Sequence record: MN091626.1
Length of the DNA stretch: 64,000 nt
Direction: 5' to 3' (one strand)
Under the pieces are notes generated by a model. The model saw nothing but the letters and a program-made list of their open reading frames with translations, had not been told where the DNA came from and did no database searches. Made by a program: the position numbers and the translations under genes. Positions 2,383 to 62,454 of the stretch are shown here, piece by piece; position 1 is the first letter of the stretch, and every line of letters starts with the position of its first letter.

Positions 2383-2386
2383 ATAT

Positions 2387-21544: not shown

Positions 21545-21739
21545 ATGTTCTGGAAAGTATCAAAGAATCTCTTAAAGTTATCTAGAAGTATTTTAACATT
21601 CATTGAACTTAATTCAAATAAAAAGAAATATCCACCTTATTTAGCTTTTTTAGTATTCCAGAATAGTATAACAATAGATCAAGTTCCTAATGAATTTAAA
21701 GAAGAAGTTCAATATTTATTGGATGAAAGTTTTAAATAA
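21545..21739 (+). CDS. CD1375/XkdX-like small protein
   Basis: C-terminal 'ITIDQVPNEFKEEVQYLL' matches the 'TIxDVPxxxREEVxxxL' pattern. Confidence 0.55.
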   Translation: MFWKVSKNLLKLSRSILTFIELNSNKKKYPPYLAFLVFQNSITIDQVPNEFKEEVQYLLDESFK

Positions 21740-29765: not shown

Positions 29766-29805
29766 TATGCGGATATGACATATAATAAACTGTCATATCC
29801 GCATA
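29766..29805 (-). terminator. Hairpin/terminator after 29856-35735
   Basis: tatgcggatatgaca / tgtcatatccgcata, 15-bp stem. Confidence 0.7.
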
Positions 29806-29855
29806 ATCTTTACTATATAAAAGAGTTGTTCTTCTATTTATTCAAATCATTAACT

Positions 29856-42570: not shown

Positions 42571-43482
42571 TTATCTAAAACGTTTTTTGTATTCTTCTTC
42601 ATATTTAGCATTGACATCTGAAACTTTAATATCTTTACCATCATCTGTTTTAAAGTTATCTTTATCAATTTCTTCACCTTTAATTACTTCTTTATCTTCA
42701 TTTTCTACTTTAGCCACCATAGCAATATGAGGTGGTACAAATGATGCTTGTTTAACTGTTTCCATTTTAGCATTATGAATACGACCTTTAATTAATTTAC
42801 GAGAGAAATGTACATTTTTCATAGTTAATGTTTTACCTTTGACTAATGCATTTTCTCTAAGTGCATCAATTTCATTAATAATATCACTTAATTCTTTTTT
42901 AGAATATCTATTATCTTCTAGATTTGCTACTAAGTCATTAATAAGTTCTTCTTTAGTATAAGATTTCTCACTGAATTTTTTAACATTTTTCTTTCTACTA
43001 GTCATTTTCTTTTTACCAACCTTCTGATTTGATTTAGTTTTTGTACTTTGTTTCTTTTCTTTTAATACTGGGTTCTTAACTTCTTCTTTAGTCTCTTCTT
43101 GCTTAGTTTCTACTTTATCTTCTTCTTGTTTAGTTTCTTTTTGCTTAATCTCTTTTGCTTTCTCTGGATTTAAACCTGAAGCTGTTACAGTTACTTTATC
43201 ATAAGAACTTTCTGTTGGAATATCCTTAAGATTAATTTCAACATCTTTAAGTTCATCTGAATTGATGAAAATTTCTTTTTTATCATAATTAATCTTAATA
43301 ACATCATCATCTTCAGGAATTAAAACTAAATTCTTTCTGTCATATTTCTCTGGAATAGTTTCGATATCAAATGTAATTGTATCTCCTTCATATCCTTGTT
43401 CTTCTGATAATTTAATCTTAGCTGACTCTAATACAGTTAAATCCTCTTTTTCTTTTGTAACTTTCTTTCTTGTAATTGCCAT
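42571..43482 (-). CDS. HU/TF1-like DNA-binding domain fused to an N-terminal Ig-like region
   Basis: C-part 'TKEELINDL...SKKELSDIINEI...LVKGKTLTM...GRIHN' parallels HU; ATG 43482 is 10 nt from AAGGAG. Confidence 0.55.
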   Translation of the reverse strand: MAITRKKVTKEKEDLTVLESAKIKLSEEQGYEGDTITFDIETIPEKYDRKNLVLIPEDDDVIKINYDKKEIFINSDELKDVEINLKDIPTESSYDKVTVTASGLNPEKAKEIKQKETKQEEDKVETKQEETKEEVKNPVLKEKKQSTKTKSNQKVGKKKMTSRKKNVKKFSEKSYTKEELINDLVANLEDNRYSKKELSDIINEIDALRENALVKGKTLTMKNVHFSRKLIKGRIHNAKMETVKQASFVPPHIAMVAKVENEDKEVIKGEEIDKDNFKTDDGKDIKVSDVNAKYEEEYKKRFR

Positions 43483-43555
43483 ATCCAAATCTCTCCTTAT
43501 ATAAAATAATTTGAAGCTAATATTCTTACTAACTTCATTAAAATAATATATATTT
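43476..43555 (-). repeat. Copy 1 of an identical promoter + RBS/start cassette (inverted relative to 49664-49758)
   Basis: 21-mer aaatatatattattttaatga (43555-43535) and 23-mer aaggagagatttggatatggcaa (43498-43476). Confidence 0.9.
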
Positions 43556-45054: not shown

Positions 45055-45315
45055 ATGATACAAGTGGATAATAATAATGTAAGTAGTAAAATCAATAAAA
45101 ATCAATTACAAACAGCAATGAATAATATGTCTAAAAATATAAATGGTATAGGTAGAAAGCTATCAGGACAAGATAAAATTGATGAGATTAATAAACTTAA
45201 AAGAGAAAATGAAGAATTACATCGTTTTCTCTTTAAGATCTATCAAGATGATGATTTTGATAGAAGAGAATTGAAGAAAATTATATTTAAAGATGTAAAT
45301 AAAAAATTTAAATAA
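45055..45315 (+). CDS. Small coiled-coil protein, paralog family A
   Basis: Ends ENEELH...DVNKKFK; aligns without gaps to 45318 and 45991 over the last 36 aa. Confidence 0.7.
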   Translation: MIQVDNNNVSSKINKNQLQTAMNNMSKNINGIGRKLSGQDKIDEINKLKRENEELHRFLFKIYQDDDFDRRELKKIIFKDVNKKFK

Positions 45316-45317
45316 GG

Positions 45318-45524
45318 GTGATTAATTTGAATTCAGATATCCGAATAGATAGAAGTGGTCTTTATATACAATCTAATGAGAAGCAGATGAAGGGACAAAT
45401 TAAAATTATAGAAGAAAACAAAAAATTAAAAGATTTTATTATTGGTATTAAAAATAATGGTGGTTATGATGAAAAGGAATTAAATAAAATAGTAAATGAA
45501 ATTGTTAAGGAGAATTTAAAATAA
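45318..45524 (+). CDS. Small coiled-coil protein, paralog family A
   Basis: Ends ENKKLK...EIVKENLK; stop overlaps next ATG. Confidence 0.7.
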   Translation: MINLNSDIRIDRSGLYIQSNEKQMKGQIKIIEENKKLKDFIIGIKNNGGYDEKELNKIVNEIVKENLK

Positions 45525-45979
45525 TGTCAAATGAAAAAGTTATTGCTAAAGAATTAACGTTAGACCAGAAAATTAAAATGTTAGAACCAAAGATAGATGA
45601 AGAGACTTATTTAAGACCATTAAGTCAAGTAGATGAATCTTTTTATAATGAGGTTATTAAAGATGAATTAATTGAGAAAATTAATAATGAAGACCATAAA
45701 TTTGAAAATAATTTTGATTATCATATATTTAAAAACGGACCAATACAATTACTAGGTTTCATTTATAAATTTGAATTTAATGAAAATGCAGTAAACGTTA
45801 AAAAAGAAAAACCTAATGAAGGTAATATCTATTTTGGAAGCTTTATATTAAATAATAAAAATAAAAAAGATGATTCAATATATTTACTTAGAGTTGATAG
45901 CAGCTTAGTTGATTTCAGTATATTAGAAAATAAAAAATATAAAGAATTTGGCAGAAACTTATTTAAATTAATTAAATAG
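45524..45979 (+). CDS. Hypothetical protein
   Basis: AAGGAG RBS, coupled to upstream stop. Confidence 0.65.
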   Translation: MSNEKVIAKELTLDQKIKMLEPKIDEETYLRPLSQVDESFYNEVIKDELIEKINNEDHKFENNFDYHIFKNGPIQLLGFIYKFEFNENAVNVKKEKPNEGNIYFGSFILNNKNKKDDSIYLLRVDSSLVDFSILENKKYKEFGRNLFKLIK

Positions 45980-45990
45980 GAGTGATATAA

Positions 45991-46269
45991 ATGGATAAAG
46001 AAATCGAAGATCTAGCAGGAAAAATAAATAATCTAGAAATTGACCTTAAAGGGATAAATTACAGATTATCTAATGATAAACAAGTTATTGATTTTGAAAT
46101 AAATAAAATTAATGAATATATTAAATTTTTACATGAAGAAAATCAAAGCATCAAAAAAGAAAATATGTTGTTAAAAGAAGCAATAGTGTCTATTTCTAAA
46201 CATACAGAATTTAAGAATGATTATATAAATAAACTGTCTAAAGAAATTGTTAAAGAAAATTTTAAATAA
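45991..46269 (+). CDS. Small coiled-coil protein, paralog family A
   Basis: AGGAG RBS; ends ENMLLK...EIVKENFK. Confidence 0.75.
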   Translation: MDKEIEDLAGKINNLEIDLKGINYRLSNDKQVIDFEINKINEYIKFLHEENQSIKKENMLLKEAIVSISKHTEFKNDYINKLSKEIVKENFK

Positions 46270-46289
46270 TAAAGAGATGTGATTTTATT

Positions 46290-46565
46290 TTGAATAATGA
46301 AAAAAGTTTAATTAAGCGTATGGAAGAGTTAGAAGAACGTACTAGAATGAATGAAATTAAATTAAATACTATGAAAGATAATTATCATTATATAAATGAT
46401 ATCATAGGCACATTAATTAATAGAATAGAAAATTCTAATCAAACTAATGAAAAGAAATTGGATGAAGTAAGATTAGAGTTAGTTCGTCTTTCTAACGAAT
46501 TAAATTCACATTCTGAAGTAACTAAAAAGTATCTAAAGAATTTTATCAGAGATAATCTTAAATAA
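46290..46565 (+). CDS. Small coiled-coil protein with C-terminal tag
   Basis: Heptad pattern; ends FIRDNLK. Confidence 0.65.
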   Translation: MNNEKSLIKRMEELEERTRMNEIKLNTMKDNYHYINDIIGTLINRIENSNQTNEKKLDEVRLELVRLSNELNSHSEVTKKYLKNFIRDNLK

Positions 46566-46569
46566 AGGA

Positions 46570-46851
46570 ATGAAGTGCATGAAGACTATTAAAAGAATAA
46601 TTGGCTCAGAAGAATTTATCAATACGGTAAAGAAAACTATAGCTAGAACTAAGAAAGCAGAAGAGAAATTTTATGATTTAAATAATAGAGTTGATAAAGC
46701 TTTATCTTTAGCTAGTAGAGTTGTTGAAGATAATAAAGAAAAAGAAAGACAAATTAAAGAGCTAAAAGAAGCTTTATCTAAAGAAAAAATTAATAACAGA
46801 AGCATAAAATCCCGATATAATAGATTATTATATAAAAATGGAGGGAAATAA
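46570..46851 (+). CDS. Small coiled-coil protein
   Basis: Heptad pattern, in tandem array. Confidence 0.6.
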   Translation: MKCMKTIKRIIGSEEFINTVKKTIARTKKAEEKFYDLNNRVDKALSLASRVVEDNKEKERQIKELKEALSKEKINNRSIKSRYNRLLYKNGGK

Positions 46852-46856
46852 TAATT

Positions 46857-47084
46857 ATGAACTCAAATATTAATTTTAATGATAATGGATCATCTATGGA
46901 TGAACTATATTCAAGAATGCAACTTAGAGCCGCTAAACAAGTAGAAAAAGATATATTGGGAGATACTGAAAAAGATTCCCTAGAAAAAGAATTAAAAGAA
47001 CTTAGAGAACTTGTTCTTGAAGTAGCTAAAAAGTATGATGTTAAAGAAATAAAAGAATATCTAGTTAGAAAAAATATGAAATAG
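46857..47084 (+). CDS. Small coiled-coil protein, family A-like
   Basis: GGAGGG RBS; 'ELKELRELVLEVAKKYD...LVRKNMK'. Confidence 0.7.
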   Translation: MNSNINFNDNGSSMDELYSRMQLRAAKQVEKDILGDTEKDSLEKELKELRELVLEVAKKYDVKEIKEYLVRKNMK

Positions 47085-47109
47085 TGTTTAAGAAAAGAGT
47101 TGAATAAAA

Positions 47110-47301
47110 TTGGTTGAAAATGATTTAGATATCTTTAAAGCAATTGAAAAAGCAACTAATAATATCTTAGATAAAAATGAAAAACTAAAAAGTGAGAATT
47201 TAGAACTTAAAGAATTGATATTAGATATTTCTAAAGAATATAATATAAAAGATAAAAGAATAACTGAAATAAAAGTTGATCTAGCAAAAAATAAGAGGTA
47301 A
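47110..47301 (+). CDS. Small coiled-coil protein, family A-like
   Basis: 'ENLELKELILDISKEYN'; stop lies in terminator stem. Confidence 0.55.
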   Translation: MVENDLDIFKAIEKATNNILDKNEKLKSENLELKELILDISKEYNIKDKRITEIKVDLAKNKR

Positions 47302-47324
47302 TGACAAATTAATGTCATTACCTC
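47295..47324. terminator. Bidirectional terminator
   Basis: gaggtaatgaca / tgtcattacctc between convergent genes; stem resembles that at 14294. Confidence 0.8.
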
Positions 47325-47337
47325 AATTATACTGCTT

Positions 47338-49566: not shown

Positions 49567-49663
49567 AATTATTTCACTTCCATTCTTATTTTGTTATAAT
49601 AAATGCATGTTAAAGTTCGAATGAGCATATTAATAAAAAACTAAAAATTTCAACTAATATTTT

Positions 49664-49758
49664 AAATATATATTATTTTAATGAGATTGAGATGGAATTA
49701 ATCTTAATACTCAAAAAATAAAAATTTTTAATTACAAGGAGAGATTTGGATATGGCAA
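49664..49758 (+). repeat. Copy 2 of the identical promoter + RBS/start cassette
   Basis: 21-mer at 49664-49684 and 23-mer at 49736-49758. Confidence 0.9.
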
Positions 49759-51296
49759 AAGTAAAATACTCACAAACAAAATTATTGGTAAGAGGAGCAT
49801 TTAGATCAGATGAAATTATCAACGTAGTTGGTGATGGCGGAATTGGTAAAACACAAATGATGAGAGATATTGCAGAAGAAGATAATATGAACTTCATTAC
49901 TATCGCTGCAAATAACCTTAAAGAAGGGGAATTATCTTTACCAATGTTATCACAAAAAGATAATGAAGTTATCTATGCTCCAATGGATAAAATTAAGTTA
50001 GCTAATAGTCTTTTTGAGAGATATAAAGAGTATCAAAGAGAAGGTGGAAAACAATATTCACGTAAAGACCTTTCTTTAAAATCTGTTGATGAATTAAAAG
50101 AAATTTATGTGAAATTGACTGGTAAAGATGTTGTTGATTATTATGAGGATACTCATGAAAACTATGTTAATAAAGTATTTAACAAAGCTAGAGTTAAAAA
50201 TGTTAAATATAGTAAAAATGATTTAATGAAAAAATCATTTGATGAATTAAATGAAATCTTTGTAGAATTAACTGGTAAAGAATTAAGAGATAAAATTGGT
50301 AAAGGTTTCTATATCAAAGAAATTTTAGAAGCAGTTCCAAGACCTTATACTCTATTATTTATTGACGAAATTGGACGTACAGACCAACAAGTACAATCAG
50401 AGTTAATGAACTTCTTATTAGAACGTCAAGTAAATGGTTATCATTTACCACCTAACGTTAAGATTGCATTAGCACAAAACCCATCTTCAGACATGCCAGG
50501 ATTTGAAGACTCAGAATACGCAGCAACTTCTATGGATAACGCAGTAAGTTCTCGTATTACATTTGTACACATGGTTCCTGATATTGAAAGTTGGGTAGAC
50601 TTTGCTACTAAATATAAAGATGGTTCAGAAAAGCAAAATATTCATCCATCTATTGTTGAGTTCGTAACTGAAAAAGAAAGTACTGAATATTTATTCAGAC
50701 CTCATAAAGAAGCTGGTAAAGACTTCAATGATACTAACCCACGTTCTTGGGAAATGATTTCTAATATGTTATATGTATTAGAAGAAGATGATTTATTTAA
50801 ATTCTCTAATAGTGAAGAAGAGAAACGTAAGAAGAAAGATACTTTACAATTCTTCACTGAAGGTAAAATTAATAGTGATTTAGCAAACTTATTTGTTAAA
50901 TTCTATATTGAAAAACAAGCTAAATTACCTCGTCCAAGTGATATTTTATTTGAATATGATAAAGGTAAAATGGTTCCTCGTAAAGAATTAGCTAAACAAC
51001 ACATTGAAGCTATTGAAAGTCAATCAACTATTAGACAATTAACATTGAAAACTTCAATGATTAACTATCTTAAAAATAATCCTGATTTAGCTGAAGAACA
51101 AGTTATTCAAATTGCTGTAGAAGCTTTATTATTAGGTAAAGTTGAAACTAATGCTACACCAATTAGATTAATTTCTAGACTTTCAGAATCTACTGAAGAG
51201 TCAGACCAAGAATTATATGAGAAATTCACTGATAATGAATTATACAGTGATAAAGCATTTGCATTATACGAACAAATGGTAGGAAGCTTAGGATAA
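49752..51296 (+). CDS. MoxR-like AAA+ ATPase
   Basis: Walker A GDGGIGKT, Walker B LLFIDEIGR, 'IALAQNP', 'MDNAVSSR', 'NPRSWE'; ATG 49752 preferred on RBS spacing. Confidence 0.88.
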   Translation: MAKVKYSQTKLLVRGAFRSDEIINVVGDGGIGKTQMMRDIAEEDNMNFITIAANNLKEGELSLPMLSQKDNEVIYAPMDKIKLANSLFERYKEYQREGGKQYSRKDLSLKSVDELKEIYVKLTGKDVVDYYEDTHENYVNKVFNKARVKNVKYSKNDLMKKSFDELNEIFVELTGKELRDKIGKGFYIKEILEAVPRPYTLLFIDEIGRTDQQVQSELMNFLLERQVNGYHLPPNVKIALAQNPSSDMPGFEDSEYAATSMDNAVSSRITFVHMVPDIESWVDFATKYKDGSEKQNIHPSIVEFVTEKESTEYLFRPHKEAGKDFNDTNPRSWEMISNMLYVLEEDDLFKFSNSEEEKRKKKDTLQFFTEGKINSDLANLFVKFYIEKQAKLPRPSDILFEYDKGKMVPRKELAKQHIEAIESQSTIRQLTLKTSMINYLKNNPDLAEEQVIQIAVEALLLGKVETNATPIRLISRLSESTEESDQELYEKFTDNELYSDKAFALYEQMVGSLG

Positions 51297-51304
51297 CAAT
51301 TATA

Positions 51305-51333
51305 GATAATGGAGATTATTAGTCTCCATTATC
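51305..51333 (+). terminator. Hairpin between AAA and VWA genes
   Basis: gataatggagat / gtctccattatc followed by a T-rich run. Confidence 0.65.
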
Positions 51334-51360
51334 TTCATTTATTTTTTTATAATTAGGAGA

Positions 51361-53298
51361 GTGAATTTGATAATGAATGATAATAGAACAATTAAAGTAA
51401 TTAGAAAAGAAATATTAGACGAAGTACAAGAATCGATTGTAAATGATAGACAGTTAGATAAAAAGAAATTAACAAAGCTTGGAGAAGAATTAATTGAAAA
51501 TAGTATTTTTGTGTTGTATACTTCTGATGTTGATATTTATGGAGTAATGTTAATGACTGTAGAAAAGATCATTGACATTGAAATTCCAGAACCAACTTTC
51601 TCAGTATTTGATGAAGAAAAAGGTTATAAGATTGGTATTAATCCAGTGTTATTAGCCACTATGGTTGATAAAGATGAAGAAATAGTTTCTATGTTCCTAC
51701 ATGAAGTTATCCATGTAGCTCATGGACATTTAATTGAATTTAGAATGTTAAGAAATAAAGAAGATTCTCAATTAAAAATGTTAAGTCACTTAGGAATGGA
51801 TTTATCAGTATTTGAAATTGAAGAAGACTTCCAATTAGGTAAACGTGAAGCTAATACAAGTAAAAAAGTTTTACCTGAAATTGCACCTAATGTAGATAAG
51901 ATTGAAAAGTATATTCAAGATAAATTTAATAAAACAAATTTTAAATTAAATCATAATGATGCTTCTCACTATTATATTAAACAATTAGTAGATATCTACA
52001 AAGAAAATAATGAAGAAGATATGTTTGATTCTATGGGTGAATCTATGCAAAATATGATTCAAGAATCTTCAGAAAAACAGAATGAACGTGATGAAGATTC
52101 ATTGAATGAAGAAAATGAAATGTTGAAAGACATGTTAGAAGATTTAAAAGACATTGAAGATAAAAATGATTTATCTAGTAAATTAGAAGATAATAAACTA
52201 GAAGAAAACAAAGTTGATGATTTTGAAAATAAAGCTCAAGATTATATGAATAAATTAGATGAAATGAATCAAAATGATGAAGAGAATAGTAATGATACTC
52301 AAAATCAGAAAAATATAGAAGAGAAAATGAATGATTTACTAGATTCAATGAGAAATAATACTTCAGATAATAAATTTAATAGTAAAGATAATAATGATTT
52401 ATCTGATAAAATACAAGAAATGAAATCAGATATATTAAATCAAATGATTCAGAATAATATGCAACAGGGTTCTCAAGGTATGCAAGGTGAAGATAGTGGA
52501 ATGCAAGATGGACAAAATGTTTCTGATATGGGAAGTAACATGACTATGTCATCTTCTTTAGATGGAAATTCTAAATATGCAGATAAATTTGATTCCAATC
52601 CTCTTGAAGGAGATGCTACAGAGGAAAGAATGAAAGACCAATTGTATGATTTATTAGAAAGTGCTAGTAGTAATAGTCGTGGTGATACACCTAATCATAT
52701 TAAAGAACAAATTGAAATTCTAAAACGTAAACCTAAGATTAAATGGCAAGATTATCTTAAAGCTAAAGTAGGTAAAAAACGTTCTTCTAGTACGAAAACT
52801 ATTTTAAGAAGAAATAGAAGACAACCTTATCGTAGTGATGTACGTGGAACTTTACCTGGTAGAAAATTAGGTAAAGTATTTGCGGCTATTGACACTTCAG
52901 GTTCAATGGGTAGAAATGAAATTGAAGAAATTATTGCTGAATTGTATTATATTAGTAGTGATATGAAAATTGATTTAGTTTTATTATTCTTCTCAACTGG
53001 TGTTGAAGAAGTAGTTGAAGTAAACAGACCAAATCAATTTAATGATTATGTAATGGGTCGTGGCGGAACTTACTTCAGTTCTGTATTTGATTTCTTAAAT
53101 GAAACTGATAACAAACGTAAATATTCAGTATCAAAAGATGATACGCTATTATTCTTCTCAGATGGTTTTGGAGAACCTGAGGTGGAATACGGTGTATTAA
53201 CTGATGTTGTTTGGGTTATTACTGAAGATGAAAATAATCTTTCAGTTAGAGATCCAAAAGGTAAAGTACTAAAATTAGAAATAGATAATAAAAGATAA
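51361..53298 (+). CDS. DUF2201-like HExxH metallopeptidase + acidic linker + VWA domain
   Basis: 'FLHEVIHVAHGH'; MIDAS 'IDTSGSMG', 'GRGGT', 'FFSDG'; true start probably TTG 51367 or ATG 51373. Confidence 0.85.
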   Translation: MNLIMNDNRTIKVIRKEILDEVQESIVNDRQLDKKKLTKLGEELIENSIFVLYTSDVDIYGVMLMTVEKIIDIEIPEPTFSVFDEEKGYKIGINPVLLATMVDKDEEIVSMFLHEVIHVAHGHLIEFRMLRNKEDSQLKMLSHLGMDLSVFEIEEDFQLGKREANTSKKVLPEIAPNVDKIEKYIQDKFNKTNFKLNHNDASHYYIKQLVDIYKENNEEDMFDSMGESMQNMIQESSEKQNERDEDSLNEENEMLKDMLEDLKDIEDKNDLSSKLEDNKLEENKVDDFENKAQDYMNKLDEMNQNDEENSNDTQNQKNIEEKMNDLLDSMRNNTSDNKFNSKDNNDLSDKIQEMKSDILNQMIQNNMQQGSQGMQGEDSGMQDGQNVSDMGSNMTMSSSLDGNSKYADKFDSNPLEGDATEERMKDQLYDLLESASSNSRGDTPNHIKEQIEILKRKPKIKWQDYLKAKVGKKRSSSTKTILRRNRRQPYRSDVRGTLPGRKLGKVFAAIDTSGSMGRNEIEEIIAELYYISSDMKIDLVLLFFSTGVEEVVEVNRPNQFNDYVMGRGGTYFSSVFDFLNETDNKRKYSVSKDDTLLFFSDGFGEPEVEYGVLTDVVWVITEDENNLSVRDPKGKVLKLEIDNKR

Positions 53299-53306
53299 TT
53301 CAAATT

Positions 53307-53338
53307 ACGTCAATGGATATTAATTTATCCATTGACGT
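53307..53338 (+). terminator. Intrinsic terminator/hairpin
   Basis: acgtcaatggata / tatccattgacgt. Confidence 0.7.
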
Positions 53339-53375
53339 TTATATTTAAAATTTTTTACTTAAAGGAGATTAAACA

Positions 53376-55439
53376 ATGTTAAAAAAGACTACAGAAAATG
53401 AATTAGAAAAGTTATTCAATGTCACTATTTATAATGAAGAATTTTCTAATTTAAAACCTATGTATAATAGAAAAGATACTGAAACTAGAACTAAATTAAA
53501 TGACAATCAAAATTCTAGAGTGTATGAGAATTTAATAAATTTCATTAATTATTCTAAAGCAGGAATGACACACATGTTTTTAACTCGTTCTAATAAATAT
53601 AGAGATAAATATATTGATTTTCTAAGAAATAGACTTGGTAAGGAAGATTTATTAGATGAGGTTGAATTTGAATATACAGATAGATATTTCAGATCTTTCA
53701 TATATAATATAGATATAATTAGAAGAAGTGAATATCAAACACATCAATCTATAGAAAATGACTCTAAATTAGAAGATTCATTCTTATTAAGAAATGGAAA
53801 TACAAATATAGATAGCTTTAAAACGGATAATGGTTTATCTATAGAATTTTTAGATAAAGATGTAAAGAAAGATTTTTTAGATAAGAACAAACAAATTAGT
53901 TTAGAATCTTTGCTAGCTATCGATACGATGGTGTCTAATTCATTAAGAAAGAAATGGTTAAAATCAATTGAAAAAGAAGAATTACCTGATATGAATATTA
54001 TATTTAAAGAAGTTCCAGAAGTAGTAATTATACTAGCAAACAGTATATATGAAAGATCAAATTTCAAATTATCATATGTAGATAGAAGTGTTATTAATAT
54101 ACACGCAGACGTTTCAGATGTTTTGGAATCAATACTAACTTTAACTTCTAATTTTAATTATAAATTAATATTAGATTTAATAGATGAAGATTACTTAAGT
54201 AAAAATTTAAATCATTTCAAAGCTTCTGAATTTTCTTTATCTGACAATAATGACATTGATAATATATTTAGTATAATCGGAATTATTAAAAAACAAACGG
54301 ACGTTATTAATAAATTTATAGAAAAAAGCAAATCAGATAATCTAGAAGACAATATTAATTTAATAATTAAAGAAAATGAAATAGATGATGACTTTGGAGA
54401 AATATTAAAAGTTTATATTGATAGTGTATTATCTAAATTTAGAGAATATATTGAAGATGATACCAATATATTAAAAGATTCATCTAAGGTTTTAATAGGT
54501 GAAAATCTATTTGGTTTCTTTATGAAATTAGATGATCTCGAAATTTTAATGATTAGAAATATATACAGAGTTTTAGATAGTAATGTATATAATCCTGTAA
54601 TCAGAGATGTTAAAGAATCACAAGAAAAAGTTATGAATGGAATAGTAGATTATTTTAAAAATAATACTAAAAAATTATCTTTAGATTTATCTAATATCGA
54701 TATAAGTAGATTGAAAGATAGTTCTTTCACATTATTAAACGATTTCATAACAAATGGAGAAGTAAGTAATCTTCGTATGAAACCTAATGAAGCTAATATA
54801 GAGTATTTCTATAAATTAAGTGTGGATAAAGAATTAAACCGTGACATATTAAATAGTAATATACAATATATGAAACAGGAATTATTAAAAGGTTTTAATG
54901 ATGATTCTAAAATGACTTCGAATGCTATTATTGAATTTGATAATTTTAATATTAATTTTGCTGTAATAGAAAATAATTCATATAATAATGAAATAGAAAT
55001 AATGATGCAAGGAGTTACTTTTAAGAAAAAATTAACTGATGAGGATATTGCTACTATCTTTTTATATTCACATAAAGAAGTTAGTATATATCAAGACAAA
55101 AAATTAGTTATCATGGATAGAAATTATTTCTCTAGAAGAGGTATAAATAAATTTATAAATAATATGAATAATGTCTTCACTGATTTAGATGGAGAAAGTT
55201 TATCTAAATATATGTCTTTAATTTATAATTTATTATCTTTATCAGATAATTCTTTTGAGGAAGATAAAGCAATTTATAATACTCTATATTACAATAAATT
55301 TGAATATATTAATAAAGAAAATGAGTTAAAAGTTGATAGTTATATTAATATGATTAATAATAAAGATGTAACAGATGATTTTAAAAAGAAATTTAAAAAG
55401 GTAAGATCTAAGTATTTAGTTTCTAGAATATTTATTTAA
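53376..55439 (+). CDS. Hypothetical 687-aa accessory protein
   Basis: AAGGAG RBS; ends LVSRIFI; no family recognised. Confidence 0.65.
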   Translation: MLKKTTENELEKLFNVTIYNEEFSNLKPMYNRKDTETRTKLNDNQNSRVYENLINFINYSKAGMTHMFLTRSNKYRDKYIDFLRNRLGKEDLLDEVEFEYTDRYFRSFIYNIDIIRRSEYQTHQSIENDSKLEDSFLLRNGNTNIDSFKTDNGLSIEFLDKDVKKDFLDKNKQISLESLLAIDTMVSNSLRKKWLKSIEKEELPDMNIIFKEVPEVVIILANSIYERSNFKLSYVDRSVINIHADVSDVLESILTLTSNFNYKLILDLIDEDYLSKNLNHFKASEFSLSDNNDIDNIFSIIGIIKKQTDVINKFIEKSKSDNLEDNINLIIKENEIDDDFGEILKVYIDSVLSKFREYIEDDTNILKDSSKVLIGENLFGFFMKLDDLEILMIRNIYRVLDSNVYNPVIRDVKESQEKVMNGIVDYFKNNTKKLSLDLSNIDISRLKDSSFTLLNDFITNGEVSNLRMKPNEANIEYFYKLSVDKELNRDILNSNIQYMKQELLKGFNDDSKMTSNAIIEFDNFNINFAVIENNSYNNEIEIMMQGVTFKKKLTDEDIATIFLYSHKEVSIYQDKKLVIMDRNYFSRRGINKFINNMNNVFTDLDGESLSKYMSLIYNLLSLSDNSFEEDKAIYNTLYYNKFEYINKENELKVDSYINMINNKDVTDDFKKKFKKVRSKYLVSRIFI

Positions 55440-55441
55440 AT

Positions 55442-55486
55442 ATATATTATATAATTGAGTTGATAATTGAACTTATCAACTCAATT
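55442..55486 (+). promoter_or_regulatory. Early-type ATATATTAT motif followed by 14-bp leader hairpin
   Basis: atatattat 55442-55450; aattgagttgataa / ttatcaactcaatt; then AGGAG RBS. Confidence 0.55.
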
Positions 55487-55511
55487 TAATTTTTAATTAA
55501 TAGGAGATGAA

Positions 55512-56699
55512 ATGGATATGAGTAAAGCAATAAAAGATTTATTTATCAATTACAATATATCTTATATTGAAGTTAATGAAGATCATGAACTTAATGAAAT
55601 TGATAAAGAAGAATTATTAAAAATATTAGATTTTGATATTAAATTTGAAAAGGAAGAAATTTTAATAAGTGATAATATTAAAATAAATAATTTTAACGGT
55701 AATAAGTTAATAAATTTTGTATTTAATTATTACTATACAGATAATGAATCACTAAAAGTATTTTTAAAAGACGTTATCAAAGATATTATTATGTATGGAT
55801 ATAAAGAAGATAGAAAAATAAGTCTAAATATAAATCAATTACCTTTAGTATTTTATATAAATAAATTTTGTAAAGATAATGACATTAAAAATATTAAATT
55901 CTTTTATACTTTTAAAAATTCTTATGGGAATTTTTCATTTGGTTTATTAAAAGAAGAACATCTAGATGAATTTATTGATGATATAGAAGAAATAAGCAAT
56001 AATAAGTTCTTCAATTTAAATAGAGAATTTTTAGATACTAAATTATTGATTAATGGAGATAAAAAGAAATTTATGAAGCTAATATCTAGTTTAATAGATT
56101 TGGATATGTCGCATAAGAGTAATATATTTAAATTAACAATGATAAATTATTTTTATAAATTATTCAATATTCATATTAATAGTAAAGAAGATTTAGAGTA
56201 TGCAGATGAATTAATGAAGTCTAAAATAGATAGCGTTAAATATGATGAATTTAATAAATACTATATATTTGAAAGATCCATAATTGGTATAGATACATTA
56301 TATGAAAATGAACTCCTAGGATACAATACAAGAATAAACCATAATTATTTTACTGATAAAATACAAAAAGTTGAGGATGAAGATAAAGTTAAACATCTTT
56401 CAAAAATCAGTTTCTTTAAATCAATAGATGACATTTATAAAGAAGCATTATTCTTGTTATCCTTTGAAACAGCCAATGAATATACAGACATTGCAGTTAA
56501 AGAAGTATTAAGATTAATTGAAAATAATTTTACAGAAAATCAGAAAAAACAATTTGTTAAAGCATATATGAGTATCAAAGATAGTTCATTTAACGTTTCA
56601 AATGATAAATATAATCAAACATCTACACTTGTTAAAATGTCTAAAGGAAAATTAAAGAAATTAATTATGAATGAAACAGTTAAAAAGACATTTATTTAA
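55512..56699 (+). CDS. Hypothetical accessory protein
   Basis: AGGAG RBS; ends TVKKTFI. Confidence 0.65.
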   Translation: MDMSKAIKDLFINYNISYIEVNEDHELNEIDKEELLKILDFDIKFEKEEILISDNIKINNFNGNKLINFVFNYYYTDNESLKVFLKDVIKDIIMYGYKEDRKISLNINQLPLVFYINKFCKDNDIKNIKFFYTFKNSYGNFSFGLLKEEHLDEFIDDIEEISNNKFFNLNREFLDTKLLINGDKKKFMKLISSLIDLDMSHKSNIFKLTMINYFYKLFNIHINSKEDLEYADELMKSKIDSVKYDEFNKYYIFERSIIGIDTLYENELLGYNTRINHNYFTDKIQKVEDEDKVKHLSKISFFKSIDDIYKEALFLLSFETANEYTDIAVKEVLRLIENNFTENQKKQFVKAYMSIKDSSFNVSNDKYNQTSTLVKMSKGKLKKLIMNETVKKTFI

Positions 56700-56713
56700 A
56701 GGAGAATCCGCTT

Positions 56714-57427
56714 ATGTTAGTTAAAGAAGAAAAATTAAAAAATAGAAATGATATTAGAATAGACCATATTATAAGTATTAATTTAGATGATCCTTCTGCA
56801 CTTAATATGGTTTCATTTCAATTATTAATAGAAAGTAATATTCTGAGTTGTTATATTAATAACAACTTGGATACTACTTTATTTACTAAAAAAGAATTAG
56901 ATAAATATAATAAATTCATAGATTTTGCTATTGATAATTTTGAATCAAATGGATTATTTATAAATAAAAAACCGGATGAATTTCTAACTGGTTTAATAAG
57001 AAAAGCTTCTATTTCTAGATTATTTAAAATGATTGATCCAATTGATAAAACTATCAGTAATGAAAATTTATTTATCACTAGATTAAAAAATATTAGACAT
57101 AATATAAATGAAACAGATAGTAAAGATTTAGCTTATTTCTTATACACCAACTTTAGAGAAGATGTTCCGTTAGATAGATTAAAAGGTTTAATGTCCAATC
57201 CACATTTAACATCATTATTTGAGTATTTAATGAATGGCAATTTAATAATGGAGATTGACGAGCAATTATTAAATAAATGGATTATGTTTATTGATTATGA
57301 AATAGATGATATTAAAGGACCTATTTATCATAGATTAAGACATAGTTTAGTTAATGTAATTAATAAGTATAATAATATACAAGAAGCTAAAGGTTATTTA
57401 GGGTATGAAAGATTAGAATTAGAATAA
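56714..57427 (+). CDS. Hypothetical accessory protein
   Basis: AAGGAG RBS; ends GYERLELE; a relic of its 3' end recurs at 58754-58818. Confidence 0.65.
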   Translation: MLVKEEKLKNRNDIRIDHIISINLDDPSALNMVSFQLLIESNILSCYINNNLDTTLFTKKELDKYNKFIDFAIDNFESNGLFINKKPDEFLTGLIRKASISRLFKMIDPIDKTISNENLFITRLKNIRHNINETDSKDLAYFLYTNFREDVPLDRLKGLMSNPHLTSLFEYLMNGNLIMEIDEQLLNKWIMFIDYEIDDIKGPIYHRLRHSLVNVINKYNNIQEAKGYLGYERLELE

Positions 57428-57460
57428 ACTTAAAAAGTTTAGTGAGAAGGGAAATTTTGA

Positions 57461-58120
57461 ATGAAAAAATTTAGAGATGAATTAATAAATCACTATACAA
57501 ATTTATTGAGATTCAACGATGATTCTTTTTATTATAGATTAAAAATTAATTATTTGAATTTCGATTTCTCTAAAGATGTAAATTTAAGAAAAAATAATGT
57601 GTTTAAATTAAATTATAAAATCAGCTTTTTCCTATATTTTAAAATTTTAATAAAAGATTTTATTTCAAATAATTTAGATGAAAATGGTGTATCATTATTA
57701 TTTTCAGATAGTGTTAATAATAATAATTTTATTTCTACATTATTTGTTAAAAATAATTCTGATATTGAATTGAAACTAGATTTGGGTGCGTATTATGAAC
57801 TAGATGAAACTAAAATAGTTCTAATAGATTTAAATGAAGAGTTTAATATAGAATATTCAGATGATAGTATTATAATTCATACAGATGAAGATAATTTTGA
57901 AAATGTAGTTTATTCTATTCTAAACAAAATCAAATTCGTCTTAGAAGGAAATATATATGCATTTAGCATATCTTTATTTGGCAATGGAAAAATAGGAGAT
58001 AGTAATATATTTTATTTAGAAGAGATTGAAAATATATTTAACTCTAGAAAAAATAGTATAATTGAAGAGCTTTCTGAAAGTGAAGTTAAAAAATATAAAA
58101 TCAAAGAAGGGTTCAAATAG
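57461..58120 (+). CDS. Hypothetical accessory protein with C-terminal tag
   Basis: Ends KIKEGFK. Confidence 0.6.
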   Translation: MKKFRDELINHYTNLLRFNDDSFYYRLKINYLNFDFSKDVNLRKNNVFKLNYKISFFLYFKILIKDFISNNLDENGVSLLFSDSVNNNNFISTLFVKNNSDIELKLDLGAYYELDETKIVLIDLNEEFNIEYSDDSIIIHTDEDNFENVVYSILNKIKFVLEGNIYAFSISLFGNGKIGDSNIFYLEEIENIFNSRKNSIIEELSESEVKKYKIKEGFK

Positions 58121-58122
58121 TA

Positions 58123-58734
58123 ATGGGTGATATTAAATTTAATGAAGAATATATGTCAGTTAAAATTTATAAGTTAATTAATTTGTTTGAGTTTCAACAA
58201 ACAACTCGTAAAAGAGCATTTTCAAACCATAATTCTGAAAGTGATGAAAATGAGCTTAATATGTATATAGGTAAAAATGACAATAAAAATATGATTGACA
58301 TTTTTACTAGTTCTTTCTTTTTATACAATCAATTTAAAGATGTTTGCAGTTTAGTATTTAACAATGGTAATACTATTATTGCAGAAATTGAGATATTAAA
58401 TAAAAATAAATTGTCAATTGAAATTAATTCAGAAATCTTAATTGTTGATAGTGAAATTAAAAATTTCATTATCAAAAATGATTTTAGTGTAGGAGATGGC
58501 TTCTTAGGCTTAATTATTGAAAATGATAAAGAAAAAATTCTTAAATTATTTTTAGAATCATTGTCTGATAGTTATTTTTGGATAAACAAGAAAAGAAGTT
58601 TAAATATATCTGATTCTAAAAAAATTAAATTTAAAAAATATTTAGAAGATTTATATAAAATGAAAGATTTTTATAGTAAAGAAATCACTGAAAAAGAATA
58701 TAAAGAAAATATAGTAAAAGATAATTTCAAATAA
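58123..58734 (+). CDS. Hypothetical accessory protein, paralog of 58826
   Basis: C-term LEDLYKMKDFYSKEITEKEYKENIVKDNFK. Confidence 0.65.
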   Translation: MGDIKFNEEYMSVKIYKLINLFEFQQTTRKRAFSNHNSESDENELNMYIGKNDNKNMIDIFTSSFFLYNQFKDVCSLVFNNGNTIIAEIEILNKNKLSIEINSEILIVDSEIKNFIIKNDFSVGDGFLGLIIENDKEKILKLFLESLSDSYFWINKKRSLNISDSKKIKFKKYLEDLYKMKDFYSKEITEKEYKENIVKDNFK

Positions 58735-58753
58735 TATAATCCCAATACTTATT

Positions 58754-58818
58754 AATGTAATTAACAAATTTAAAAGATTAAAGATTATTTAGATTACGAA
58801 AGATTAGAACTGGAGTGA
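58754..58818 (+). pseudogene. Frameshifted relic of the 3' end of a 56714-like gene
   Basis: aatgtaattaacaaa...tatttagattacgaaagattagaactggagtga aligns to 57353-57427 with a net 10-nt deletion (NVINK...YL.YERLELE*). Confidence 0.75.
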
Positions 58819-58825
58819 TATTTTA

Positions 58826-59467
58826 ATGGAAGAGATTTATCTTGATAAAAGATTTGATAGTGAATATTTTAAAATAAAAACTAGAGATATGATAAACTCT
58901 GTAAAATTTACTAAAGAACCAAACTTTGATTTAATTATAAATAACCGTAAAGAAGAAAAAATTTTATATACTAAAAATGACAGTATTAGAAATCTATTTA
59001 TTGAATCTTTTATCTTGTATTTAAATAATATTACAGACGTTTATACATTTAGTATATCAATCAGTAATATTAAGTTAATTTTTAGTTTAAGATACAATCA
59101 TACGAATAAAGATACCAAATTTTTAATTTATATAATAGAAAATGATAAATTTAATTATGAAAAAGATGTATCTGAATTAGAAAAAATATTAAATGACATA
59201 TCTTCTTTAGTAAATAAAGAATACTATATATCTAAAGGTAGTTTTATAATAGACTATTTAGATATAGAAAAAATTGATAAGATATTGTATTACATTAATA
59301 AATTAGATGATCTTCGTATAATGTTAGATGATTCAGAAAAAGAAGGAAAATCGTATTTAAGTTACAACTCTTTTCTTAAAGAACTTTATTTAAAAAGAAA
59401 CTTATATTCTAAAAGTATTACTAAAAAGGAATATACTGATAATTTAGTTAAAGAAAATTTTAAATAA
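58826..59467 (+). CDS. Hypothetical accessory protein, paralog of 58123
   Basis: C-term LKELYLKRNLYSKSITKKEYTDNLVKENFK. Confidence 0.65.
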   Translation: MEEIYLDKRFDSEYFKIKTRDMINSVKFTKEPNFDLIINNRKEEKILYTKNDSIRNLFIESFILYLNNITDVYTFSISISNIKLIFSLRYNHTNKDTKFLIYIIENDKFNYEKDVSELEKILNDISSLVNKEYYISKGSFIIDYLDIEKIDKILYYINKLDDLRIMLDDSEKEGKSYLSYNSFLKELYLKRNLYSKSITKKEYTDNLVKENFK

Positions 59468-59471
59468 TATA

Positions 59472-59506
59472 ATCCCAATACCTATTACATCAATAGGTAT
59501 TGGGAT
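59472..59506. terminator. Bidirectional terminator
   Basis: atcccaatacctatt / aataggtattgggat between convergent genes. Confidence 0.85.
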
Positions 59507-59522
59507 AAATTTAAATTATTTT

Positions 59523-59798
59523 TTATTTCATGCTGTCTAATTCAGCTAATTTTAATTTAGCTTTAGTTGCATATTTTTGACGAATTATGTCACGCCATTT
59601 TTTACGAGCACGAGCAGCTTTTTGATATTTAAAGTAAATTGGATCTTGAGCTTCTTTAGCTGCAACTAATGCTAATTGGTTTAATCTACGTTTACGTTTA
59701 GTACGTTCATCTAAACGCATGATATTTTGTTCACGTAAAAGAGCTTCATCAGTTGCTTGCATAATTTGCTCTTCTAGTGGAGTAATGTTATTTTTCAT
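59523..59798 (-). CDS. Small basic, highly expressed helical protein (possibly virion)
   Basis: High-expression codons (cgt, gct); AAAGGAAG RBS supports ATG 59798; near-consensus late promoter AACA-TATTTC-TT at 59860-59849. Confidence 0.65.
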   Translation of the reverse strand: MKNNITPLEEQIMQATDEALLREQNIMRLDERTKRKRRLNQLALVAAKEAQDPIYFKYQKAARARKKWRDIIRQKYATKAKLKLAELDSMK

Positions 59799-59945
59799 AA
59801 TGGAAGATCTTCCTTTCAATTATTTTTATTATTCATTATAATGATTATAAGAAATATGTTTTATTTAAGAAATATGAAAAAATTATTGAACCATAATAAC
59901 TTATCTTATATAAGTATGAATCTATAAGGAGATGAGAATTTATTT

Positions 59946-61880
59946 ATGTCTAATCAAGATAATAAATATGAACGTAAAAGAGCTATAACAGGATATTTAG
60001 AAAATTTAATCAAATTAATTAAAATAAGAAAACCTGATATTGATAATGAAAAGTTAATTAATACTTGTAGAGAGTATATTAAAAAACATGTAGATCCAGC
60101 TTTAATAGAAATATCTGGACAAAAAATGAATGTGGATACAACTTTAAGACAAATTATAGATAATAATTTAATTGTAACTGGTTCTGGTTCTATTTATCAG
60201 CCTCAATCACAAAGAAAAAATTTAAATGCAGACATGTTAAAAGACTTTATAGATTCTCGTAAAGTAGCTAAACATAATATGTTTATATATAAAGGTAAAG
60301 ATGATGTTTTACATGATAAATATATGAACGAACAAAAAACAATTAAGATCTTGGCTAACAGTTATTACGGTGCTATGATTCAAAAGAATAGTACATTCTA
60401 TGATGCTAATTCAGGTCCAGCAACTACTTATAGCGGTGTTGATATTGTAACTACTTCAGCAATAGCTTTAGAAAGATTTATAGGTGGAAAAATATTCTTT
60501 ATGAAAATTGATGAAATATATCATTATATATTAAGAATAATTAATGAAAAATATGAAGATCATGATATTAAGATAAAATCAATTCCGACTGATAAAGAAA
60601 TTTTAGAAGGTTTAGTTTCTAATGTTGAAGAAGATTATAGTGAAGAAGAATATCTTAAATTAGAAGAAGTATTTAGTAAATTAAGTCAAGAAGATAAAAA
60701 TAAGGTATATTTCAAAAATAACTTATTTGGTTTAATTGATCATACTGATATATTTGAGAATAAAATTAGTAAAATGACTGGTAGAGAAGATTTCTTAGAT
60801 CCAAACGAACCACCTGAAGATATGATTCCATTATTAGATGAATTATTTGAAATATTAAAAGATTGGGTTATATACAACTATCAAGATTATAATAGAATGT
60901 ATAGAATGAATTACAAGAAACGTAGAAGTGTTCTCACAATTGACACAGATTCAAATTTCGTACACTTAGATCCATTATACGAAAAAATGAAATCATTAAA
61001 ACCTGAAGATTTTCCTCTAGCAGAAAATGGTTTAGAAGATAAATTAGAAGAACGTGTAGGTAATATATCTATTATTAACTATCAAATAACTAAGTTATTA
61101 GAATTATCTTACTATGGATTCTGTAAGGATGTAGGATTAGAAGAAGAACATTTAGGCTTAATATCAATGAAAAATGAATTTTTACTTGATAAACAATTAA
61201 CAACAGATAAAAAGAAAACTTATGCATCATCAGTAATTCAACAAGAAGGTAATTTAATTCAACCTCCAGATTTAGATGTTAAAGGTATGGCTATTAGAAA
61301 AGTTAATACTAATAAACGTATTAGAGAATTATTTACTGAAATATTACAAAAAGATATTTTAGAAAATAAAACTGGTGTAGATCGTATTAAGATAATACGT
61401 AAATTTAAAGATATTGAAGAAATGATTAAGAAATCATTAGATAATGGAGAAATCGAATTCTTAAAACCATTTAAAGCTAATAATGCTGAAGTTTATAAAG
61501 ATCCTTATTCTCAAATGGCTTATAGAGCTGCTTTAGCATGGAATATAATGTTCCCAGAAAAGGAAATAGCACTACCTGCTAAGATATTAGCAGTTAAATT
61601 AAATATTAGTACATTTGGTGATATTAAGAATAAAATAACTGATGAAGATACTTTAAATAGATTTAGAGAAGTATTTAAGAATGAAAGTTTAGTTAAAAAT
61701 GGTTTAAATGTAATTGCAGTCGAAGGTAATACAATTCCTGAAGAGTTTAGACCTTTTATTGACTATGATAGTATGATTGAAGATCATATTAAACCAGGTA
61801 AAGATATTATTGAATCTATAGGAGTTAGAGTATTGGAATCTTCAAATAGCTCATCTGTATCTAATATGATTAAATTCTAA
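59946..61880 (+). CDS. Divergent family-B DNA polymerase chain (split phiKZ/AR9 type)
   Basis: Motif B 'KTIKILANSYYG', motif C 'IDTDSNF', 'KKTYA', 'LDVKGM'; no exonuclease or motif A recognised. Confidence 0.82.
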   Translation: MSNQDNKYERKRAITGYLENLIKLIKIRKPDIDNEKLINTCREYIKKHVDPALIEISGQKMNVDTTLRQIIDNNLIVTGSGSIYQPQSQRKNLNADMLKDFIDSRKVAKHNMFIYKGKDDVLHDKYMNEQKTIKILANSYYGAMIQKNSTFYDANSGPATTYSGVDIVTTSAIALERFIGGKIFFMKIDEIYHYILRIINEKYEDHDIKIKSIPTDKEILEGLVSNVEEDYSEEEYLKLEEVFSKLSQEDKNKVYFKNNLFGLIDHTDIFENKISKMTGREDFLDPNEPPEDMIPLLDELFEILKDWVIYNYQDYNRMYRMNYKKRRSVLTIDTDSNFVHLDPLYEKMKSLKPEDFPLAENGLEDKLEERVGNISIINYQITKLLELSYYGFCKDVGLEEEHLGLISMKNEFLLDKQLTTDKKKTYASSVIQQEGNLIQPPDLDVKGMAIRKVNTNKRIRELFTEILQKDILENKTGVDRIKIIRKFKDIEEMIKKSLDNGEIEFLKPFKANNAEVYKDPYSQMAYRAALAWNIMFPEKEIALPAKILAVKLNISTFGDIKNKITDEDTLNRFREVFKNESLVKNGLNVIAVEGNTIPEEFRPFIDYDSMIEDHIKPGKDIIESIGVRVLESSNSSSVSNMIKF

Positions 61881-61902
61881 ATAATTGAATGAGGTATTTA
61901 TT

Positions 61903-62454
61903 ATGGAAAAATACTATAAATTTAATTTATTTGAGTACATACTGAAAAATATTGGTATGCATTCAGATGAATATGAAAATTTGATAAGTAATATAAATAA
62001 AAATTTTACATCTTTATATTTTTATGACTATGAGATTAATAATAGTGATATAGATAAATTGATATATGATAATATTCAAAAACAATTAATTGATGATAGC
62101 TATTTTTTATTTGAAATCAATAAAGAAGAAAGATTATTAGTTGATTTTGAAAATAACTTTTTATATGATAAATATAATGAGAAAATAGGAATGGTTTCTT
62201 TAAATAGAATTACTTCTTTTGAGAATAAATATAGAGATTTAATATTTATGGAAAAAGAAGATATAAAATATGAAAATTTAATTGATATGGGGTTTAATAT
62301 TGTACCTACTTTTGAAATTTCTACTGTATGTAAAAATAAAATAAATAATTTTAGTTACTTTGGTTTTGATATTAAAGATAATAAAAATAAGCTATTAATT
62401 GAATGTGATGAAAAAGAATTCAAGATAAATAAAGTTAAGAATAATTTTATATAA
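61903..62454 (+). CDS. Hypothetical protein with C-terminal tag
   Basis: GAGGT RBS supports ATG 61903; ends KVKNNFI. Confidence 0.6.
   Translation: MEKYYKFNLFEYILKNIGMHSDEYENLISNINKNFTSLYFYDYEINNSDIDKLIYDNIQKQLIDDSYFLFEINKEERLLVDFENNFLYDKYNEKIGMVSLNRITSFENKYRDLIFMEKEDIKYENLIDMGFNIVPTFEISTVCKNKINNFSYFGFDIKDNKNKLLIECDEKEFKINKVKNNFI

Follow-up and report, generated by a model that had tools for sequence, protein, structure and literature searches.

A strictly C-terminal peptide tag on tandemly arrayed ORFan genes of S6-like Staphylococcus jumbo phages

The window analysed in this study is a 64,000-nucleotide stretch of the Staphylococcus jumbo phage PALS_2 (MN091626.1; 268,748 bp), which covers record positions 124001-188000, so that a window position equals the record position minus 124,000. 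Our subject is a short Lys/Glu-rich peptide, hereafter the tag, with which many of the predicted proteins of this phage end. A preliminary description of the span 45055-62454 had quoted eleven such termini, and all of them were found at the ends of the respective open reading frames (ORFs; Table 1). The span is 100% identical to PALS_2, with identities of 98% to S6 and DC4 and of 82-94% to Madawaska, MarsHill, LY01, SA1, AH12, Machias and PB50. It begins with an array of small proteins (45055-47084), whose opening gene 45055-45315 comes after a RecD-like helicase. Further along lie the genes of a MoxR-like AAA+ ATPase and a VWA-like protein (the AAA/VWA pair), a long ORFan, a second array (55512-59467) and one more tagged ORFan.

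The ORFs of PALS_2 were called by a greedy longest-ORF rule, which gave 292 ORFs with the record analysed in six separate pieces; the choice of start codon has no effect on the C-termini. An 8-residue position matrix was built from the tags of the phage itself and used with a threshold score of at least 10, which is reached by 7.5e-5 of internal positions. The tag was found on 39 of the 292 ORFs, where 0.02 would be expected from the internal rate and where 500 shuffles of each protein's own last 40 residues gave 0.03 on average and never more than 1. The window by itself had eight terminal hits among 54 ORFs and no internal hit in 18,913 positions. An iterated 16-residue position matrix served as the definition of 35 strong tags, which score 14.6-39.5 bits against 10.5 for the best of ~80,000 internal positions. 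As both matrices were trained on the same termini that they score, the fair controls are the contrast of terminal with internal positions and the shuffles, and these exclude chance or composition as the cause. PALS_2 thus carries a strictly C-terminal peptide motif with enormous enrichment, present on ~13% of its ORFs and 9% of its coding capacity. The preliminary description had made its claim depend on terminal enrichment over a composition-matched null, and on this point it was right. Its figure of about 11 tagged proteins held in part: eight are clear at the threshold and 53376-55439 is marginal, but 45055-45315 and 46290-46565 are not individually significant.

Table 1. Tagged, tag-like and related features of the window (8-res. 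and 16-res., scores from the 8-residue and 16-residue matrices; aa, amino acids)
Feature	Position	Strand	C-terminus	Remarks
64-aa ORF outside the span of the preliminary description	21545..21739	+	LLDESFK	marginal, tag-like; 8-res. 5.7, p ~5e-4
AR9-type early site	43543..43555	-		exact 13-mer; faces - strand gene 42571-43488, next to tape-measure region
86-aa ORF	45055..45315	+	DVNKKFK	weak, tag-like; 8-res. -2.2, internal p ~1e-2
68-aa ORF (annotated start 45387)	45318..45524	+	IVKENLK	short tag, last 8 residues only; 8-res. 10.9, p 7.5e-5
92-aa coiled-coil-like protein	45991..46269	+	IVKENFK	tagged; 8-res. 19.3, 16-res. 14.6
91-aa ORF	46290..46565	+	FIRDNLK	tag-like; 8-res. -0.6, p ~5e-3
75-aa protein, helical by sequence	46857..47084	+	LVRKNMK	full 16-residue tag; score 29.7
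AR9-type early site	49664..49676	+		exact 13-mer upstream of AAA gene; matrix score 18.2
MoxR-like AAA+ ATPase, untagged	49746..51296	+		Pfam AAA 27.6 bits; annotated MoxR-like ATPase; homologues AR9 gp028, BpSp gp083
VWA-like (DUF2201) protein, untagged	51361..53298	+		Pfam PF09967 at residues 508-639; homologues AR9 gp029, BpSp gp084
687-aa ORFan	53376..55439	+	LVSRIFI	marginal tag; 8-res. 4.7, p ~9e-4
AR9-type early site	55438..55450	+		exact 13-mer at head of array 55512-59467, before 55512-56699
395-aa ORFan	55512..56699	+	TVKKTFI	short tag; 8-res. 10.8, p 7.5e-5
237-aa ORFan, untagged, in array 55512-59467	56714..57427	+	RLELE	no family found
219-aa tagged ORFan	57461..58120	+	KIKEGFK	16-res. 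30.6
203-aa tagged ORFan	58123..58734	+	IVKDNFK	16-res. 36.4
213-aa tagged ORFan	58826..59467	+	LVKENFK	16-res. 32.4
Tagged ORFan, 183-189 aa (annotated start 61903)	61885..62454	+	KVKNNFI	16-res. 32.7; N-terminal aromatic-pair motif

An artefact at the level of DNA or composition, namely a regulatory or recombination sequence at gene ends or a bias towards Lys-rich ends, would find some room in this genome, as its G+C content is ~25%, Lys also ends more of the untagged ORFs than any other residue (52/232) and the tag codons of 45318-45524 contain the ribosome-binding site of the next gene. The codons of the tag, however, vary as genome usage predicts (the fraction of identical codons among same-residue pairs is 0.73 vs 0.68 expected), and the tag is therefore conserved as protein; a DNA-level signal is excluded by this test. 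The distance from the tag to the next gene varies. A degenerate DNA key, composed of the back-translated tail and a stop codon, matched seven times in the 0.27 Mb of PALS_2, whereas 596 Gb of genomes yielded 11 scattered single matches, none of them ending an ORF with the tag. With the 39 observed tags standing against the shuffles as well, such an artefact is effectively refuted.

Selection on the tail was compared with that on the rest of the proteins in 125 reciprocal-best orthologue pairs, formed from PALS_2 proteins and those encoded in the first 150 kb of Machias, a member of the sister clade (its AAA protein is 71% identical). The 18 tagged pairs had 78% identity over the last 16 residues and 55% over the body, while the corresponding values for the 107 untagged pairs were 68% and 70%. 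The tagged proteins thus evolve faster than average and their tails slower than their own bodies, and purifying selection at the protein level is stronger on the tail than on the bodies. Among the genes of the window, the C-terminal end of 45991-46269 is kept in its Machias orthologue and 88% of the tail of 46857-47084 is kept in that of Machias. The two phages also differ in gene content: no Machias orthologue was called for the three genes in 57461-59467, and the syntenic Machias stretch holds a single short gene.

The seven-residue termini quoted in the preliminary description belong to a real terminal motif, but the motif is longer, with 14-16 residues and often a short strand ahead of them. 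In the 35 strong tags, numbered backwards from the stop codon, we found Lys/Arg at -1 (28/35), Phe at -2 (34/35, with Met in the remaining one), Asn/Gly at -3 (21/35; Asn 16, Thr 6, Gly 5, Ser 3 and a hydrophobic residue in just 2), Lys/Arg at -5 (30/35) and Val/Ile at -6 (34/35). Further inwards there is Lys/Arg at -10 (33/35), an aromatic or aliphatic residue at -11 (34/35), Glu at -12 (26/35), Lys/Arg at -13 (27/35), Glu at -14 (23/35) and Ser/Thr/Asp/Asn at -15 or -16 (31/35). The charged columns are conserved together with the hydrophobic ones, the last 16 residues have an average net charge of +1.4, and in every copy of PALS_2 and Machias the number of residues after the Phe-x end is zero. 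By the textbook rules of helix capping, this layout would suit a self-contained capped helix, with a capping residue three positions before a Glu at its N-terminal end, Glu/Lys pairs four apart and, at its C-terminal end, Asn/Gly and then a hydrophobic residue. A membrane-targeting amphipathic helix was set aside, as eight of the ~14 positions are charged and the hydrophobic residues would not fall on one face when the column counts are judged by eye. An AlphaFold2 model of the tagged protein PALS2_076 (148 aa, alignment of seven sequences) predicted an alpha/beta protein with a strand at residues 130-133 followed by a helix at 135-146, with a mean predicted local distance difference test (pLDDT) score of 80.6 and a predicted template-modelling (pTM) score of 0.71.

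When 20 tagged proteins were scanned against Pfam, PHROGs and NCBIfam, no family match was obtained, and a profile of the tagged family had no match among the PDB sequences. Against 5.8 billion proteins, word-indexed searches yielded 2, 14 and 7 matches; all the named ones belonged to Staphylococcus jumbo phages and the rest were unnamed sequences from assemblies of public runs. An exhaustive profile search of 1.84 billion representative proteins returned 13 matches, eight of which were present in the earlier searches, and the remaining five closely resemble proteins of the window and of Machias and have the same tail. Similarly, tblastn with a 24-residue tail found Staphylococcus jumbo phages only. 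The degenerate DNA key matched four times in the 150 kb of Machias and gave no match in IMG/VR, and its true matches in metagenomes were two contigs of one sample (Ga0079226; contigs 1-5182 and 1-1937). The 5.2 kb contig has seven tagged genes in a row and clearly represents an S6-like relative, which shows that both arrays and tails have been retained in a relative from the environment.

In the 250 kb of AR9, a Bacillus phage related to this group, no such terminus was present, the best 8-residue score being 0.6. Only one of the 39 tagged proteins had a tblastn match in AR9, against 84 of the 240 untagged ones (p = 7e-6), and that match, of 45991-46269, is of low complexity and partly intergenic and was treated as spurious. 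The tag is restricted to S6-like Staphylococcus jumbo phages, and by its distribution it marks clade-specific ORFans. It was never seen on replication, transcription or structural proteins, in agreement with the earlier remark that core structural genes largely lack it.

In AR9, an early promoter is annotated ahead of its own AAA/VWA pair. A position matrix was built from the early promoters annotated in the AR9 record, and the same early-promoter motif is reported in the MarsHill preprint. In PALS_2 this matrix found 35 sites, nearly all of them followed by an ORF after 60-85 nt. Of the 39 tagged genes, 33 lie no more than 8 kb downstream of an early-type site on the same strand, compared with 102 of the 178 untagged + strand genes (odds ratio 4.1, p = 0.0017), and the tagged genes are thus placed behind early-type promoters. 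The exact 13-mer occurs three times in the window, where 0.11 would be expected; the small-protein array 45055-47084 has no early-type site of its own. These data bear on the suggestion that the tail is a packaging or virion-loading signal, comparable to the peptides that target proteins to capsids or load cargo. Such a signal would suit a phage whose capsid is very large and many of whose small proteins end in a short peptide, by analogy with the cargo peptides of HK97-fold shells. However, the tagged genes are preceded by early-type promoters, most structural genes lie on the other strand, and none of 15 DC4 virion proteins is tagged, although that proteome is shallow. The packaging part of the packaging or localisation signal proposed in the preliminary description is therefore disfavoured, and we regard it as very improbable.

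The same description had placed the tag around the AAA/VWA pair and named the pair as the obvious candidate for its reader. The VWA-like protein has an N-terminal His-Glu-x-x-His metallopeptidase-type motif, seen in the translation, and the two genes match the architecture of MoxR AAA+/VWA-metallopeptidase pairs, in which an AAA+ protein stands beside a VWA protein with a metallopeptidase motif. MoxR-vWA-metallopeptidase pairs have been described in jumbo phages and a role in virion assembly was proposed for them (Iyer et al. 2021, PMC7824862). We found orthologues of the pair in AR9 (gp028/gp029), PBS1 and BpSp and distant relatives in N4-like and other phages. As AR9 has the pair but no tag, the pair is not specific to tag-bearing phages, and 31 of the 39 tagged genes belong to other arrays outside the window; the tag is not centred on the pair, and the pair is not an obvious reader of it.

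Three observations nevertheless speak for recognition of the tail by this adjacent pair, in which case the tagged proteins would be remodelled, processed or removed by it. The pair and the array 55512-59467 each have an early-type promoter in front of them. In the Bacillus Takahashiviruses AR9 and BpSp, the genes directly after the pair form a paralogue family whose members end in a conserved basic helix of their own (AR9 gp030, gp031 and gp033-036 and BpSp gp088-091, at 24579-30840 and 14006-18815 of the analysed sequences), which in the AR9 genome is the only cluster of C-terminal similarity. With a matrix built from ten AR9/BpSp tails, the PALS_2 tags scored higher than untagged termini only at a shift of one or two residues (Mann-Whitney p = 2e-9 for offset 2), with no difference at offsets 0 and 3. 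With this matrix, however, no single PALS_2 tail was significant, and homology of the tagged set to AR9 gp030-036 was rejected, as a profile search of PALS_2 found nothing even with the filters off. Together with the distance of most tagged genes from the pair, its retention in AR9, PBS1, BpSp and N4-like phages and the virion-assembly role proposed for such pairs, this makes recognition by the pair improbable. The AR9/BpSp family may still be an ancestral counterpart of the S6-type tag, which the weak sequence likeness offers as a lead on its origin and not on its function. It occupies the same genomic position as 53376-59467 and shares the conserved basic C-terminal helix with its weak, register-specific likeness. 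It differs in that its members, four to six copies in one cluster, are similar over their whole length (E = 1e-10 to 1e-38) and in that its tail is unlike the PALS_2 tag and two residues longer.

The carriers of the tag were described as otherwise unrelated, and this applies to most of them as far as detectable similarity is concerned. When the last 24 residues were removed, phmmer (E <= 1) linked only six of the 35 strongly tagged proteins, in two small clusters, and BLASTP gave the same result. On the other hand, the strong tags all lie on the + strand in seven tandem arrays (untagged ORFs, 174 vs 58), some carriers are paralogues, and an aromatic pair within the first 22 residues is common to 19 of 33 tagged proteins, compared with 26 of 252 untagged ones. 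Within the window, the paralogues 58123-58734 and 58826-59467 are alike over their C-terminal 59 residues (BLASTP E = 7e-9). Proteins with the N-terminal motif also tend to have the strand ahead of the helix (Fisher p = 0.005, from crude patterns). The same helix is found on proteins of 75-95, 142-265 and 301-395 aa, and the full helix is carried also by proteins of 75-95 aa with a helical, coiled-coil-like sequence, for example 46857-47084, in which both the N-terminal motif and the strand are missing. Compared with other proteins, the tagged bodies contain strongly fewer Ala, Gly, Pro, Gln, Thr and Trp and more Phe, Tyr, Ile and His. They also lean further towards AT-rich codons.

These features raise the alternative of a purely structural tail, in which all carriers would descend from one ancestral fold, its domain closed by the terminal helix and by a strand near either end of the chain, while the middle has diverged beyond recognition; the tail would be conserved for folding and read by nothing. 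The one-strand tandem arrays with their similar size classes, the paralogy demonstrable within some arrays and the N-terminal motif tied to the pre-helix strand are what such a fold would leave. In the PALS2_076 model the end of the strand and the start of the helix (residues 131-140) form the block of highest confidence in the protein (pLDDT 91), and the AR9/BpSp set is an ordinary paralogue family that conserves a C-terminal helix along with the rest of the protein. The last eight residues of the same model, however, are the most conserved and yet have its lowest confidence (pLDDT 61). A Foldseek search of BFVD with the model retrieved only three proteins, all from its own small family, with no other tagged family among them, and a search against the PDB gave nothing at E <= 0.001. 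A closing element of a fold would also account poorly for the full tail on the 75-95-aa proteins, for charged positions as conserved as the hydrophobic ones and for the lack of a single copy shifted by even one residue at the stop. We therefore consider a purely structural tail less likely than not, but still a serious alternative.

A few further observations concern individual genes. A stretch of ~15 nt is common to the 3' flanks of 58123-58734 and 58826-59467 (58735-58751; 59468-59520), and an inverted repeat after 58826-59467 resembles an intrinsic terminator; this is in keeping with a recent tandem duplication extending into the 3' flank. Just two relatives of 58123-58734 were found among the 5.8 billion proteins of the word-indexed search. 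For 45318-45524 there was no family match in Pfam, PHROG or NCBIfam, and the public annotation of 53376-55439 as 'DNA-directed RNA polymerase, omega subunit family protein' is without support in these three collections. A divergent family B DNA polymerase has its catalytic part (Pfam PF20286) at 59946-61880, whereas its exonuclease part is annotated far off, at record positions 207098-208105, and the polymerase is therefore split. BLASTP shows a relationship between the giant neighbours 29856-35735 (-; 1959 aa) and 35759-41737 (-; 1992 aa), and their Machias counterparts are annotated as tail lysin and tape measure protein. Elsewhere in the PALS_2 record, the retron-type reverse transcriptase PALS2_015 is immediately preceded by ~1.3 kb in which no genes are annotated (23601-24879); the MarsHill relative appears in a 2026 preprint that deals with reverse transcriptases with tandem repeat arrays.

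Taking the evidence together, we tentatively read the tag as the conserved tail, acting as a docking handle, of a clade-specific and tandemly amplified superfamily of fast-evolving, predicted early genes, 39 of them in PALS_2, a reading to which we would give slightly less than an even chance. A handle, and not only a piece of a fold, is favoured by the invariance of the exact end, by the joint conservation of charged and hydrophobic columns, by the very different bodies that carry the tail and by its slower evolution relative to these bodies. Under this reading, a short self-capped Lys/Glu-rich helix would have to end exactly at Phe-Lys-COOH, the divergent bodies would supply different specificities and the invariant tail would bring every body to one shared partner of phage or host origin. 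The partner might be the early AAA/VWA-peptidase pair of the phage, the phage GroEL or a host hub protein.

Several points weigh against a docking handle. The tag was never found on a protein of known function or on one with AR9 homologues, where a transferable label might be expected. The N-terminal motif of 19 of the 33 proteins, with its tie to the pre-helix strand, and a tail start that is the best-modelled part of PALS2_076 would allow the tail to be simply part of a conserved fold. Moreover, one family was modelled with confidence; the model of the PALS2_123 family (pLDDT 43.8) was discarded. The early class of the genes is a timing predicted from promoter motifs, and docking on a partner, like each of the partners named above, is something that we only infer.

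In an extension of the docking-handle reading, the ~40 tagged proteins could be interchangeable adaptors, where each body would bind a different target of the host or of a rival phage and the helix would plug into a single early machine such as the AAA+/VWA pair. We regard this as a long shot. If true, it would amount to a phage hub-and-spoke system for remodelling or removing host proteins, similar in its logic to the F-box or PRANC adaptor families, with the AR9-like family next to the pair as its ancestral form. Most jumbo-phage genes are ORFans without any handle, and here ~13% of otherwise unclassifiable genes are united by one selected terminal helix. If this helix is a docking handle, a single partner would give a mode of action to ~40 genes per genome and would show how the S6-like lineage organises its early, fast-evolving genes. 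If it is a fold element only, the set would still be the largest lineage-specific expansion that we found reported for this phage group, with extreme divergence around conserved termini.

A search for paralogues, motifs and C-terminal features in the papers on PALS2, DC4 and MarsHill/Madawaska/Machias and in jumbo-phage overviews brought up no mention of the tag, nor did broader full-text searches, nor the SA1 transcriptome paper as far as its passages with expression terms are concerned. Import into the phage nucleus of chimalliviruses works without terminal signals, and chimallin is missing from AR9-like phages (PMC13282480); the tag is therefore not explained by any jumbo-phage sorting system known so far.

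Among the known terminal signals, the HbYX motif resembles the tag in that the extreme C-terminal position matters and an aromatic residue stands at -2. In HbYX, however, -3 is hydrophobic, -2 is Tyr and -1 can be any residue, whereas -3 of the tag is mostly Asn, Thr, Gly or Ser and -2 is never Tyr. Degrons of the ssrA type and other protease degrons have a non-polar end, and ssrA is added by transfer-messenger RNA (tmRNA); the tag is encoded in the gene and its last residue is mostly Lys/Arg. The tail of the single-stranded DNA-binding (SSB) protein is acidic with a hydrophobic end, unlike the positively charged tag, whose carriers have no OB-fold or family match. Sliding-clamp-binding motifs consist of a conserved Gln followed by spaced hydrophobic or aromatic residues, but the tag has no Gln-rich column and Gln is depleted in the carriers (ratio 0.43). 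Cargo peptides, such as those of encapsulins, the encapsulation helices of microcompartments and the capsid-targeting sequence of T4, are likewise short terminal peptides or helices common to different proteins. Their cargoes are made together with the shell, whereas the PALS_2 genes look early, have no product among the proteins seen in the shallow DC4 virion proteome and come with no indication of a cognate shell.

Other parallels are offered by families of proteins. Like an ordinary tandem paralogue family, the tagged genes form one-strand arrays. With the tail off, only six of the 35 cluster; on the other hand, the N-terminal motif is common to 19 of 33 and one pair in the window is alike over its last 59 residues, the fold comparison covering one family. 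F-box proteins and the poxvirus ankyrin proteins with a C-terminal PRANC/F-box-like module are adaptor families that also comprise a large, fast-evolving set of paralogues per genome, with variable bodies and a short C-terminal module thought to reach one partner. No relation to them in sequence or fold was found (Pfam, PDB by sequence and Foldseek), and the PALS_2 module is a single helix of 14-16 residues. Lineage expansions in jumbo phages, such as the ~35 zinc-ribbon copies of Bacillus phage G (PMC7824862), similarly place tens of copies of a small module in one lineage, but in the PALS_2 set only the terminal helix, often with the N-terminal strand, is recognisably common. Terminal docking motifs and lineage-specific expansions are thus both known, and what appears to be new in PALS_2 is that ~13% of the genes of a phage are united only by a strictly terminal helix.

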